NCBI GenBank assembly: GCA_965153285.1
Contig: OZ229123.1
Direction: 5' to 3' (one strand)
Length of the DNA stretch: 64,000 nucleotides
Origin: Podarcis tiliguerta
Taxonomy: Eukaryota
Part shown: piece by piece, positions 7,873 to 57,309 of the stretch
Position numbering within the stretch: position 1 is the first letter of the stretch
How the letters are laid out: each line of letters starts with the position of its first letter
Notes under the pieces: generated by a model
The model's input: the letters and a program-made list of their open reading frames with translations, nothing else
Databases searched by the model: none
What the model was told of the DNA's origin: nothing
Program-made: the position numbers and the translations under genes

Positions 7873-8070
7873 GGGGCCATAGCTCGGTGGTAGAACATCT
7901 GCTTTGCATGCAGAAGGTCCCAGGTTCAATCCCTGGCAGCATCTCCAGGTAGGGCTGGGAATGCCCCTGCCTGAAACCCTGGAGAGTGGCTGCCAGTCAG
8001 TGTCACCAAAACTGAGCTAGATGGACCCAAGGGCTTGACTCAATGTAAGGCAGTTTCCTGCATTCCTATG
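7873..8070 (+). mobile_element. tRNA-Ala-derived SINE (Squam2-like); degraded copies near 1185, 9985, 22250, 22420, 27800, 41070, 44330, 53855
   Basis: GGGGCCATAGCTCGGTGGTAGAACATCTGCTTTGCATGCAGAAGGTCCCAGGTTCAATCCCTGGC head (A/B boxes) followed by a shared body and TTCCTATG tail. Confidence 0.8.
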
Positions 8071-34360: not shown

Positions 34361-35785
34361 ATGGACCGCTTTGCCCACTCTGGAACACAGACAGATGCTG
34401 TGGTGGTGCTGTCTCTGGCCCAAGCAGCCGTCCTGGGCTTGGTGACTGAGAACGAGTTTTTTGGTGCCACCGTCAGCCCCGGAGGTTTCTTCTCCAGCTT
34501 CACAGGCAGGCTCGACGGCATGTCCATGGTTGAGTTGAAGCAGCCGGAAAGCCATTGCCCTCTGGAGAATGAAGGCCAAGGTCACGCCGAGCCAGTGGAG
34601 GAGGATGAAGCAGCAGAGGCTTCCTTTGGGAAACATGCCCGGAGGAGGAAGCGCCCGCCTGTGAGGCTGGTGCCAAAAGTGAAGCCGGAGAAGGGCGAGT
34701 GGGGGCAGGAAGACGGTGCTTACGAAGCATCAGTAGCAAGTGAGGGCAAGGAGGAGCAGATGGGCAGCCACCCTGTGAGCCTGGAGGAGTCCCCCTGTGA
34801 GCAGACGGTGCAGAGCAGCGCTACCAAGATGATAGATCTCAGCACGTTCAACAGGAAGCCTCGACGCCTGCGGCACCTGCGGCAGCAAGCTCCAGAAGAG
34901 CTGTCCCTGGGTGGGTATGAGGAGAGGCTCCCAAGCACCCCACAAGCCAGCCTGGACAGCACTCCGGGGAGTGCAGAGGCCTTCTCCAGTGACTGCGGCT
35001 TCCAGGCTGGTGCTCCTCCTCCCTTGATCAATCTGGAGCATCCTGTGCCACACTCTCCTCCTGGGCAGGGCAAGAGCGAGCTGGGCTTTGTGTGGCAGGA
35101 GCCCCTGGACTTTGAGGTGGAGGCCCATGGCGAGCACAGCAAGAAGGTTCAGTTGGACCGCCTGGACATCAACGTCCAGATAGACGACTCCTACCTGGTG
35201 GAGAAGCGTTGGCNNNNNNNNNNNNNNNNNNNNNNNNNNNNNNNNNNNNNNNNNNNNNNNNNNNNNNNNNNNNNNNNNNNNNNNNNNNNNNNNNNNNNNN
35301 NNNNNNNNNNNNNNNNNNNNNNNNNNNNNNNNNNNNNNNNNNNNNNNNNNNNNCTCACCCACCAGGGCACGCGGCCCCACAAGTGCCAGGTGTGCCACAA
35401 GGCCTTCACCCAGACCAGCCACCTCAAGCGCCACATGCTGCTGCACTCCGACATCAAGCCCTACAGCTGCCGCTTCTGTGGCCGCGGCTTCGCCTACCCC
35501 AGCGAGCTGAAGGCCCATGAGGGCAAGCACGAGAGCGGGCGCTGCCACGTCTGTGTGGAGTGCGGCCTGGACTTCTCCACCCTCACCCAGCTCAAGCGCC
35601 ACCTGGCCACCCACCAGGGACCCACCCTCTACCCCTGCCCAGAGTGCAACAAGTCCTTCCATTACCGTAGCCAGCTGCAGAACCACATGCTCAAGCACCA
35701 GAACGTGCGGCCCTTCGTCTGCACCGAGTGTGGCATGGAGTTCAGCCAGATCCATCACCTTAAGCAGCACTCGCTGACCCACAAG
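34361..35785 (+). CDS. ZNF710: ZNF710 first coding exon
   Basis: GCCATGG start; ends HSLTHK AAG|GTAGG. Confidence 0.95.
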
Positions 35786-52899: not shown

Positions 52900-53400
52900 C
52901 GATAAGCTTCTAAGCTTGACCACTCAGACAGCAGTTAAATGAGGTCCAGGCAACTCTTAAACAAACTGCAAACATAGGAGATAGTGCAGCTGAGCTGCAG
53001 AACAAAGTACACGATGCGTTGTAAAAATATAAATGAAGAGTATCTAAAACAAGAAGACCTTGAAAAAGATGGCCACCAAAAGCTTCATTTTCCGACTTTG
53101 CTAAAGCAGTAGGGGGTTCAGGCACAGAAATCTTCCTTGGAAGTTGACTTGGCCAGCTCCTGGAACTGGAAGAAATGGGCAAGACCCCCATGCACTGAAG
53201 GTAAGTCCTGAGCAGGCTTGGAAGCTGGTGCCACTCTTTGCCCCTGAGCCCTGACACAACTGCAGCCTCCACAATAAAGCACACACCATCTTTCTCTCAC
53301 GGAGAAGCAAAGATCCCAGTGGAGGGAACTTGCAAGATTTATGCACAATAAAACAAAGGAGACAATATTAGCTGAAGCCAGAAAAAAGATGCTCACTCAA
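52900..53400 (+). mobile_element. Degraded L1 ORF1 remnant
   Basis: LARFMHNKTKETILAEARKK resembles the L1 ORF1p RRM/CTD junction; otherwise disrupted. Confidence 0.45.
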
Positions 53401-54349
53401 AGAATTGATTCTACAAACTCCTTATTCCTGAAAAATATTTTTATACCACCCTTCATTAATAATACCATGGTGGTTCAAAACAATTATATTAAAACTGGTA
53501 CATTAAAATATATTCAGTAATAAAATACATCACAGGCCAGCCAGATGTCACCCAAAAATGCCTTCTGGGTTGACTTCAGCAAGCAGGAAAAGCCCATCAA
53601 CGCTGGTGCCTTATTTCAAAGGAGAGGCTGTTCCAGAAGCTGGGTGCCACAACAGAAAAGTCCCTTATTTGGGTTGTTGCAGGAAGGATCTCAGCACATA
53701 CGCAAGACAAGCTCATCCAAGGATCCTTGAATTGGGCTGGTACATGCAGGAGAAGGTCTTCCTTCAGGTACTCTCACTTCATTTATACATCAAGAATAAG
53801 AAAGATAAGCACAATATTTAAGGAAACAGTTTTTTTTATCATCACCATCCACTTTGCATACAGAAGGTCCTAGGCCCAATTTCTGGTGGCATTTCCAGGT
53901 AAGGATGGGAGATAACCCTGCCTGAAACCCTGGAGAGCTTCTGCCAGTCCGTGTAGACAGTGCTAAGCTAGATGGAACAATAGTCTGGCTCCGGGAAGGA
54001 CACTTGCTGTGTCTCTGTTACTTTCTCTCTCTCCGTTTTGTCTTTTGCTTCACAACCGGCCTGGAGAGGAGGCCTGGAGAACCTGGAATCTTCCTCCCCC
54101 CCTCCTGCCCTTTCTCCTAGTGAAGAGGTTGCTCTCTTGTGGTTTGGAGGTGTTCTATTCCCTACATGAACCAATACAGCTCAGGACACATTTTGCTCTT
54201 TAACCTTCATTTTATTTTGCTGGTTTTCTTGGAATACTTCTTAGTGGGTTTGAGCTGGAAGCCAAAGGCAGTCAAAGTCAATGTCGCTTTCCTTTCTTCT
54301 GCTGCTGGCATTTCACCAAGGAAGATCACTGGAACAGACACCTGTAGGG

Positions 54350-55201
54350 CATGGGTCGGCAAACCAAGGTCCGCGGGCCAGATCAGGCCCAATTGCCTTC
54401 TAGATCTGGCCTGTGGACGGTCCGGGAATCCAGGCAGCCGGCATAGCGCATGAGCGCGCATGATGGTTTTTGCGACTCAGCCAGGCTTGGGGGTCAAAAG
54501 TGAGGCGAGCGGCTGCTTGAGACAAGCCCCTTCTTCATCTGTGATGCACGCGCAGCAACCTTTTCTTCCAGGGTGGGGAAGAGGGAAAAGGAGCCACAGT
54601 TCGGATTTCCACCATGGAGCTGCCAGCAACTGACCTCAGGAAGGGCAGTTGCAGCAGCAGGGGCTCAGAGGCGCCTAAGAAGCAACACCTGCTGGTGTCT
54701 GAGGTGGCGGTGCTCCCCGCCAAAGGAAGCGGGGAGCGCCTGGGGGGCTGCACTCCAAAGCAGTTCTGCGTTCTGCTGGGGAGGCCGCTTGTTTGCTACA
54801 CGGTGTGAGCCATGGAAAGGTAAATAGTCGTCGCCTTGTCTTCCCTCACGTGGGGAAAAGAATGTTTTTGCTTGAGCGGCACTGGCCTGACTTAGCGTGG
54901 CCAACAGCTTTTCCCTTCACCCACACCTGCGCAAACGCTCTCCAGGGCTGACAGAAATGGCGCACTTACCTCAGCCCCCCACCCTGCCTTACAAGAGAAA
55001 TAACTGTCAATGCGTAAAACGCAAAGGAAGCAGCGTGGGTGTGTGAAGGAACACCCCCCCTCAAAAAAATCAGATTTGGGCACCGAATAAGGGTTTTTGC
55101 CCAAAAATGCGGGTCATAATCATGGCAACATATAGTCCGCCCCCTACAAGGTCTGAGGGACAGTAGACCGGCCCCCTGCTGAAAATGTTTGTTGACCCCT
55201 G
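54350..55201 (+). mobile_element. Non-autonomous hAT (Charlie/OC1-like ends) DNA transposon carrying captured host sequence (Pack-hAT)
   Basis: TIRs CATGGGTCGGCAAAC (54350-54364) and GTTTGTTGACCCCTG (55187-55201), 12/15 complementary. 8-bp TSD CTGTAGGG (54342-54349) / TTGTAGGG (55202-55209). Subterminal GGTCCGCGGGCC and GTCTGAGGGACAGT...GGCCCCCTG motifs. Confidence 0.9.
54614..54819 (+). pseudogene. CRPPA: Captured coding exon 1 of CRPPA/ISPD (CDP-ribitol pyrophosphorylase A), premature stop at 54806-54808
   Basis: ACCATGG start. [37 protein letters not shown](R) versus human [39 protein letters not shown]. Phase-2 donor AG|GTAAAT at the homologous position; no further CRPPA exons seen in the window. 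Confidence 0.88.
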
Positions 55202-56400
55202 TTGTAGGGGCTTCCCTGGATAAACAAAGGCGCCCCTCCGGGAACCAACCGCCTTATAGGTCTCCATGAGCATCCCGCCATTGCCCACGAGAGGGCGCTG
55301 CTCCCTCGGTCCGTGGCGGCGCCACTTGCTTTCACCTTCGGGAATCCCTTCGCTTAATTCCGCATTCTGGAAAATCCTCCCCGCAGGAGCGCCCCCTGGA
55401 GGGCATTGATCGAGTTGCATAAGGAAATGGAAGGGAGCGGTCTCTGCCCGCAAGCGGCTTACAATCATCCTAATAGGCAGCAGGGAATGCTATGGGCGGG
55501 GGAGGGGAAGGATTTGAACTCGACCCAACCTGGGAGCGGGGAGGAAGCCAAAATCGGGGGGCGGGGCTCCTGCTGCTGTCCTCACTGCAGCCCTGGGGCT
55601 GCCGCTGCTCAGCTGGTCCGAGCGGTGGTCAGAAGGGAATCCCGCTCCCGCGTGCCAAGAATCAGCCTCACACCTCTCCCTCTAACGCGCGCCTTGCCCG
55701 TTTCCACTTCCCCTGGCAGAGATTAACGCGCGCCTTGCCCGTTTCTCCACTGATTTGGCCAGGAACGGACAACGGGGGGCGCAGGGGGTCTCTCTTGCTG
55801 TTTGAAAGGGACCATCTTTTGCAGGTCCCTTTCAGTCTTCGGCTGACCGGGGTGAGGGTCGTGCTTACCTGGCATAGGGACAGGAGGATATTCTGTCCAG
55901 GGGGGCTGGGTGACATTTCGGGGTCCCGCCCCCTCCCCAGCTTCCGACCAGCCCGCCACACCCCCGCCTCTGCATTGTGTGGACCCCTCCCCGTATTCAA
56001 CCCCCCCCATCTCCTCCCTTTCTTGATGTCACCAGTTGGTCTGGAAGCACCGCCCCGATCCCTCCCCCCACCCCGACGGCGCCCCGCGATTCCGGCACAG
56101 ACAGGGAGGGACGCACCACAAAGAAAGGCGACGGCGGGCCACGGCAGGAGAGGCTGGGGCCGGGGAGAAGGGGTCGCGTCTGTGCAGGAGGTGAGAGAGA
56201 GAGAGGGGGGAGGGCGGGCCGGGGGTGTCTCTGCCTTCAAAGGCTGGCTCTGTGACGGGACTCAGCCCCGAGACCTGTTAGCAGCCAAGACAGACAGTGC
56301 CTCTGCCCATGTGCCGAGAGTCTTTTTTCCCCGGCAGAGGCAGGGCAGGCGGAGGGAAGCCCCTTTTCCCTGGCACAATAGCGCGCCAGGAATTTTGCAC
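55202..56400. promoter_or_regulatory. CpG island with multiple GC boxes; gene assignment unclear (the next syntenic gene in mammals is SEMA4B)
   Basis: CpG-rich; GGGGCGGGG about 55558, CCCGCCCC about 55925; minus-strand donor at 55867-55868. Confidence 0.6.
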
Positions 56401-57175
56401 TCCCCCTCCCAGAGAAAGCCCCTTCAGTTATCATCGAAATTTAGCGTGGGAGGGGCAGAGGCATTTTATATAGCTAAAGGGCTTCCGAGATTTTTTTTGG
56501 GGGGGGGGCGTCTGAATGGCTCTTTTCAGAATTAGAGGGACGCAGGTGATGGCCCCTCTGGCGCGCCCCCCCCCCCAAGTTTAGCCTTAGGCTGGGGATG
56601 TGACAACCAACAGAGCTTGTAACGGAGCTGGGACTGACCCCTCCTGAACTCTGGGGTTCAGCCGTGGCCCTTGGCAAGCAAAACAACCTGATGCCCACGT
56701 GCCCCACCCATCTCAGCAAGGCGCTGGACCAGACCCCCGGTCACCCCACAGCCAGCCCTCAAGGGCCACCCTGAGGCAAGGAGAGGAAGGCATCACAAGG
56801 GGGGTTCTAATAGCCCCCCCCCCACACACACTATATTGCCTGCATTTGCAAAACCCTTCATCTGCTGTTCCCCCACACCAGGCTGTGCTGCCAATCTGGG
56901 CACCCATTAACAAATGTTTGTATCTGTCTTGGATAGAGCATGCTTGCCAACTCAGATTTTGCCACAGAAGCTGTGAACAAAAGTGTATTTCGGAAGGACT
57001 GTCTGCCACAGGGGGGCGGCGGAGAGAGAAAGAGAAAGGGAGGGAGGGAAAGAGAGAGACTGTCCCCCCAGAACCCTAGGAGAGCACCTGCTTTATAGGA
57101 ACATATTTTTTAATTGCTTTTATATTCAATCTCCGGTGAGTTCAAGGTAGTGTATATGGTTCACTCCTCCTCAAT

Positions 57176-57309
57176 TAATTCTCTCAAACTTGAGGCCCCA
57201 TCTGTTGTTGGACTACAACTCCCATCATTACTAGCTAGAGCACCTGTGGTCAGGGATGATAGAAGATGTAGTCCAACAACAGATGGGGACCCAAGTTTGA
57301 GAAACACTG
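57176..57309. mobile_element. Short hairpin MITE of the GGACTACAACTCCCATC family; related copies about 21640-21745, 28553-28720, 45107-45281, 49960-50065
   Basis: Inverted arms CTCAAACTTG..CCATCTGTTGTTGGACTACA / TGTAGTCCAACAACAGATGG..CAAGTTTGAG. Confidence 0.7.

Follow-up and report, generated by a model that had tools for sequence, protein, structure and literature searches.

How does the 5' end of a host gene come to lie between the ends of a transposon, apart from the rest of that gene? The question is raised by positions 54350-55201 of the window, the term used here for the whole 64-kb stretch of Podarcis tiliguerta DNA that was analysed. This segment resembles the beginning of CRPPA (also ISPD), the gene for D-ribitol-5-phosphate cytidylyltransferase, and is bounded by short inverted repeats. 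The best explanation, held with a probability of about 0.87, is that 54350-55201 is an old and immobile copy of a non-autonomous hAT-type transposon whose interior was replaced by a 5' piece of the host CRPPA gene, taken from genomic DNA and not derived from mRNA.

The element measures 852 bp, lacks a transposase and ends at the termini of a very high-copy repeat family. Its 5' arm (54350-54430, plus strand) consists of 81 bp of very high-copy DNA and begins with the terminal inverted repeat (TIR) CATGGGTCGGCAAAC (54350-54364). The 3' arm (55140-55201, plus strand) contains the bin with the highest depth and closes with the second TIR (55187-55201), which reads CAGGGGTCAACAAAC when reverse-complemented. 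This arm possibly starts up to 80 bp earlier, and its length lies at approximately 60-140 bp. The two TIRs are complementary at 12 of 15 positions, and an alignment of both arms finds them alike over the terminal 15 nt or so only. Taken alone this match is within chance, as at least two hits to the pattern occur in 18 of 100 shuffles, and the case for a transposon must therefore rest on other evidence. The 8-mers that flank the element, CTGTAGGG (54342-54349) on the left and TTGTAGGG (55202-55209) on the right, form a target-site duplication (TSD) with 7 of 8 letters alike. With the ends fixed independently, such agreement has a chance of about 4e-4 (25/65536). The hAT-type TIRs and the 8-bp TSD that had been proposed from the letters alone are both present, the halves of the TSD being alike at seven letters of eight.

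The termini are defined by Logan contigs aligned to 53200-57199 at a likeness of at least 80%. The contigs come from three genomic runs, which represent three lizard species (A, the species of the window itself, B and F), and from a fourth run guessed to be RNA (X17). Immediately after 55201, 130-224 contigs per genomic run diverge from the window (20 in X17), and 136-199 diverge immediately after 54430 (24 in X17). One contig piece matches exactly 54350-54430. The loose ends at 55201 and this exact piece consequently identify 54350 and 55201 as true termini of the family. In the bins of 54350-54430 and of approximately 55076-55201 the depth sums reach thousands of times the flank values. The boundary 54430/54431 is the point at which the interior of this copy departs from most members of the family. 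A short form devoid of cargo also exists, represented by one contig of species F that joins 54411 directly to 55140.

Elements of the hAT superfamily end in short TIRs that start with CAG(N)G. The present element has short TIRs of this type, an 8-bp TSD and, at the level of the family, a hAT-like target preference. The latter is seen in the consensus of the flank after 55201, GTCTAGAG, which is identical in 4 of 4 runs. The Hermes hAT transposase generates 8-bp TSDs with the target preference nTnnnnAn (PMC10368747), and the consensus GTCTAGAG fits it. The TSD of the copy at 54350-55201 fits at position 2 (T) only, with G at position 7. Within the 64-kb window no second copy of any part of the element was found, and hence no autonomous partner is located there.

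The interior of the element, the cargo, reads on the plus strand as the 5' end of CRPPA and has three parts. The first part (54431-54613) is similar to the upstream or 5'UTR region of CRPPA, and when translated in frame +2 it aligns, from 54467 onward, with residues 3-54 of the CRPPA models of Podarcis. Two stops, at 54518-54520 and 54542-54544, interrupt the frame of the long Podarcis gene model. A pyrimidine tract followed by AG at 54560-54571 makes a candidate splice acceptor, and the match of a chimeric Zootoca gene model, described below, starts at 54572. The second part (54614-54819) is a copy of CRPPA exon 1 that includes the motif LPAKGSGER. From the start codon at 54614 (caccATGg) runs a 64-codon open reading frame (ORF), closed by a premature TGA (54806-54808), which stands 12 nt before the splice donor AG/GTAAAT at 54819/54820. 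The exon ends 206 nt after the ATG, that is, in phase 2. The third part (54820-55059) is intron-like, starts with the donor GTAAAT and is co-amplified with the exon. The Kozak ATG and the phase-2 donor described by the sequence-only reading were found exactly where it had placed them.

The IspD-type CRPPA likeness is equally real. The ORF matches the structure of human ISPD (4cvh) with an E value of 1e-7, and its residues 31-64 align with the N-terminal nucleotide-binding strand-loop. Against the Pfam family IspD the ORF scores 22.8 bits; it misses the cut-off of 27 bits because it contains no more than 34 residues of the domain. The long CRPPA models of Podarcis align to 54467-54820 in a single frame, with 71-73% likeness over 121 codons and an E value of 6e-50. 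On the 3' side, the depth typical of the cargo continues to 55075 and one contig piece extends to 55059, which brackets the 3' breakpoint of the cargo in 55060-55140. Alignment of the loose-end consensus (after 54430) to the window did not place this breakpoint, the best score being 18 against a shuffle mean of 17.1. Co-amplification and position suggest that 54820-55059 derives from CRPPA intron 1 and that 54431-54466 is likewise part of the CRPPA-derived cargo.

The extent of the homology is informative on the type of copy. On the upstream side it reaches 147 bp or more beyond the conserved Met-Glu-Leu-Pro start, and on the downstream side it ends precisely at the GT donor. Exon 2 is missing after the donor, and a tblastn search of the 64-kb window, the 9 kb downstream included, gave no other CRPPA exon. 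Homology that halts at the donor, with neither exon 2 nor any other CRPPA exon present, excludes both a retrocopy and a genuine gene. The DNA-level capture of CRPPA upstream sequence and exon 1, as originally envisaged, is therefore upheld. The interior comes from a host gene that resides elsewhere, and it was captured as DNA together with non-exonic sequence and an exon-intron boundary; an element of this composition is a Pack-TIR.

The true CRPPA gene is intact in four lacertids, in which it lies on chromosomes of 57-63 Mb. The encoded proteins are XP_053266000.1 of Podarcis raffonei, XP_028605754 of P. muralis, XP_034984871 of Zootoca vivipara and XP_033021251 of Lacerta agilis. These genes allow a different reading of the segment to be judged, namely that it is a genuine first exon of CRPPA, the TGA being an assembly error and the MITE being split around the exon. 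The correct exon-1 structure and the strong similarity to CRPPA would agree with it. However, the cargo exon is only 75-78% identical to the true lacertid exon 1, whereas the true CRPPA genes of different Podarcis species agree at about 99% in this stretch. The copy also contains three in-frame stops (54518, 54542 and 54806), and its nucleotide-binding motif is LPAKGSGER, with Lys in place of a Gly that is invariant in the LPAGGSGER of all lizard CRPPAs compared. In addition, the segment is multi-copy, and no further CRPPA exon accompanies it. The stops, the motif change, the absent exons, the low identity and the multi-copy status together refute this reading, and its probability is close to nil. 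Neither downstream exons nor a sole exon 1, the findings that would have pointed to a resident gene, are present.

The captured copy has decayed. The TGA at 54806-54808 sits where all relatives have Arg, and it is compatible with a CGA-to-TGA change. A Gly-to-Lys/Arg change in the P-loop is common to three cargo copies; it was considered as proof of a single capture and set aside, since the site is a CpG and parallel decay is possible. The cargo has in common with lacertid CRPPA a short N-terminal region, which is longer in other lizards. Its LPAT has retained an Ala at a position that is Val in all four true lacertid genes. Comparison of these residues suggests that the capture took place within the lacertid lineage and predates the split of those genera. 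As vertebrate CRPPA/ISPD does (human 4cvh), the copy has the N-terminal nucleotide-binding strand-loop. Unlike it, the copy consists of exon 1 only, with the motif Gly replaced and a premature stop, and is not a gene. Nor does it qualify as a functional CRPPA paralogue: the ORF is broken, the motif is altered and there are no downstream exons. Judged from these changes, the copy at 54350-55201 most likely has no protein function now.

The loaded element did not remain single. The bins of 54540-55075 have depth sums of about 50-80 times the single-copy value in all three species. An alternative letter at position 54680 is found in 17-18 distinct contigs per genome. Contigs that are 11-18% diverged from the window cross the junction between arm and cargo (54393-54722 in species A, 54382-54593 and 54385-54588 in F, and 54381-54595 in B). 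Others span the exon/intron-like junction at 54819/54820 (54724-54919, 54694-54943 and 54760-54991). Several diverged contigs that cross an identical arm/cargo junction indicate that the element probably multiplied after it had been loaded. The loaded family comprises at least about 18 copies per genome, perhaps several tens, in the three lizard species, a figure worded in this manner as sums of contig depth are not copy numbers.

This multiplication also bears on the proposal that a CRPPA 5' fragment was duplicated by another route, that by chance it came to be flanked by two unrelated pieces of a common MITE, and that this composite was never mobile as a unit. Chance flanking of this kind is conceivable, given that the MITE arms are extremely abundant, and the TIR match alone lies within chance. 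On the other hand, the TSD flanks the composite exactly at the two ends of the family. The arm/cargo junction 54430/54431 is common to several diverged contigs from three species, each genome has no fewer than 17-18 copies of the cargo, and copies occur at unrelated places. A chance composite is very improbable, and capture by the transposon followed by amplification of the loaded element is preferred.

The unrelated places include a V2R-like gene of Zootoca and a 98.3-Mb chromosome of P. lilfordi. In the Zootoca protein XP_034992723.1, residues 440-522 correspond to the cassette, starting 14 codons ahead of the ATG and running to ...RAMER, and are spliced onto a receptor exon. The model is named 'extracellular calcium-sensing receptor-like', is of the V2R type and contains the Pfam families ANF_receptor and 7tm_3; the cassette is an internal exon and apparently occupies the usual place of the cysteine-rich region. 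Considered as a protein model, the insertion of the CRPPA cassette could mean either that a transposon copy was truly exonised or that the annotation is at fault. The P. lilfordi protein CAI5775500.1 has 69 aa, is annotated as D-ribitol-5-phosphate cytidylyltransferase (CRPPA) and carries LPAKGS of the cassette type. By its motif and its location on the 98.3-Mb chromosome, this protein probably represents a transposon copy that was given the CRPPA name in error. It was the one match when the 64-aa ORF was searched among proteins of 35-112 aa, a result that sets no bound on the number of copies. With the cassette region of Zootoca as query, a search of annotated proteins of 450-1433 aa gave no further chimeric model, which equally sets no bound on copy number. 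The copies of the cassette thus mislead annotation, as in the 69-aa 'CRPPA' of P. lilfordi and the calcium-sensing receptor-like model of Zootoca with a CRPPA exon inside.

Two further observations concern the family. A deletion variant of the cassette joins 54592 to 54956, lacks 54593-54955 and with it the whole exon, and has TTCAAG instead; it occurs in species F, where the genomic run and the guessed-RNA run both contain it. As the same joint is present in a DNA run, it belongs to a deletion-derivative copy and is not a splice product. Exact 16-mers across the arm/cargo junction hit 119 metagenome loci. These hits were discarded as chance, and blastn of the element against all of them returned nothing at an E value of 1e-3.

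The age of the insertion can be bracketed by the contigs that cross the edges of the element. In species B one contig leads from the 3' arm out into the right flank (55140-56400) with about 95% likeness, and in species F another (54220-54491) starts in the left flank, crosses the 5' arm and enters the cargo. For species A, a contig from another individual spans 53951-54395. These contigs mean that the insertion is real, is fixed in species A and is older than the split of A, B and F. The loci of B and F join the transposon arms to the same flanks, and so an orthologous CRPPA-like segment devoid of TIR ends, which would have contradicted a captured cargo, was not encountered. No empty site was found in the contigs of the three species. 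The paralogues diverge by 11-18%, against about 4-6% for the orthologous flanks, and the burst of amplification is therefore older still than the insertion at 54350-55201.

The element lies at the edge of a CpG island, in agreement with the sequence-only reading. The observed/expected CpG ratio is 0.15 in the left flank, 0.55 in the element and 0.48-0.66 over 55210-56800. No Pfam family was detected in ten long ORFs around the island and further off. In the island, short purine-rich or homopolymer stretches at 56148-56281 and 56416-56549 draw extra contigs, one of them with a depth of 117 in the guessed-RNA run. These extra contigs look like a low-complexity repeat rather than expression of the locus.

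The position beside the island raises the issue of whether the captured element, or the family, has a function. The family could be a mobile cassette of 'promoter + start codon + splice donor' that makes new first or internal exons and gives chimeric transcripts into neighbouring genes, or it could supply RNA for the small-RNA cross-regulation of CRPPA, the copy at 54350-55201 acting as an active alternative promoter. A portable exon of this kind would be served by the promoter-like region, the Kozak ATG, the donor and the tract with AG at 54560-54571, and the Zootoca model hints at such a use. The ratio of 0.55 in an element that abuts the CpG island, the intact Kozak ATG and consensus donor, and the V2R-like model of Zootoca, which uses a copy of the cassette as an exon ending at the same donor, are in its favour. 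The guessed-RNA run also yields short contigs that are 90-93% like 54480-54634 and 54885-55059. However, the RNA label of this run is a guess, and its contigs are of read length, cover the intron-like part unspliced and could come from any copy or from DNA. The only joint seen in that run is the deletion variant from 54592 to 54956, found in a DNA run as well. Moreover, the TGA cuts the ORF 12 nt before the donor, and a single chimeric gene model exists among annotated proteins of 450-1433 aa. A functional copy or family is accordingly regarded as improbable. The preferred reading remains that of a decayed and immobile copy of the loaded hAT-type element.

The origin of this copy can be described as a sequence of events. 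A short hAT element would have suffered a break or been excised, and repair synthesis would have switched template to the open, GC-rich 5' region of CRPPA. The product would be a loaded element with both termini kept. Then, hAT transposase supplied in trans could move the loaded element, and gap repair from the sister copy would multiply it to at least about 18 copies, perhaps several tens, in an ancestor of present-day lacertids. The copy at 54350-55201 landed at the edge of the CpG island before the three sampled species split, and has decayed since then. Models of gap repair and template switching are discussed for Pack-TIRs (PMC8277862).

In plants, exon shuffling owes much to the capture of gene fragments by cut-and-paste transposons, which is one of its main routes; the cases described in animals are mostly single-copy. 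The Pack-MULEs of rice and maize hold GC-rich 5' gene fragments, including first exons and the starts of introns, between their termini, and amplify afterwards. They belong to the Mutator superfamily of plants, with long TIRs and TSDs of 9-10 bp. The lizard element, unlike the Pack-MULEs, has short TIRs, an 8-bp TSD and an amniote host. In animals, 370 Pack-TIRs have been described in 55 of 100 genomes, 208 of them on hAT elements (PMC8277862, Tan et al. 2021). The rarity that had been claimed for such elements is overstated for animals, as these numbers indicate; multiplication after capture is the rare event. Just 4 of the 370 occur in several copies: Xenopus tropicalis has three of these cases and the American alligator has one (PMC8277862).

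The closest known system is Pack-hAT-N8_XT of X. tropicalis, whose cargo is 291 bp of the CAPSL 5'UTR and which is present in three copies, each with its own 8-bp TSD (PMC8277862). The two families share a non-autonomous hAT element with both termini kept, an interior made of a 5' piece of a host gene captured as DNA, and occurrence at several loci. In contrast to the three copies of Pack-hAT-N8_XT, the lizard CRPPA family has no fewer than 17-18 distinct copies per genome in every one of the three species, and a coding exon, with ATG and splice donor, is part of its cargo as well. The main text of PMC8277862 does not contain the words 'lizard', 'Anolis' and 'reptile', and no paper on Pack-type hAT elements in lizards was found in the literature searched. 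The kind of element, the Pack-TIR, is already known, and the lizard CRPPA family is a notable and strongly amplified amniote member of it. A CRPPA-loaded hAT at 17-18 or more copies per genome across lacertids suggests that in an amniote an element can keep its mobility after loading. The decayed copy at 54350-55201 contributes a locus and an age bracket, not a new principle.

Some minor features of the window complete the description. Scans for Rfam families and tandem repeats gave nothing in the region of the element. About 350 bp upstream of it lies an unrelated repeat of very high copy number (53870-54003), with depth sums of 10,000-220,000. Hundreds of contigs diverge before 53916-53922 and after 53959 of this repeat, which is also frequent in the guessed-RNA run. 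It is probably a fragment of a SINE or MITE. The window has a sole stretch of N, at 35214-35353. A tRNA-like sequence at 7873-7944 (plus strand; Rfam RF00005, 39.9 bits) could be a tRNA gene or the head of a tRNA-derived SINE.
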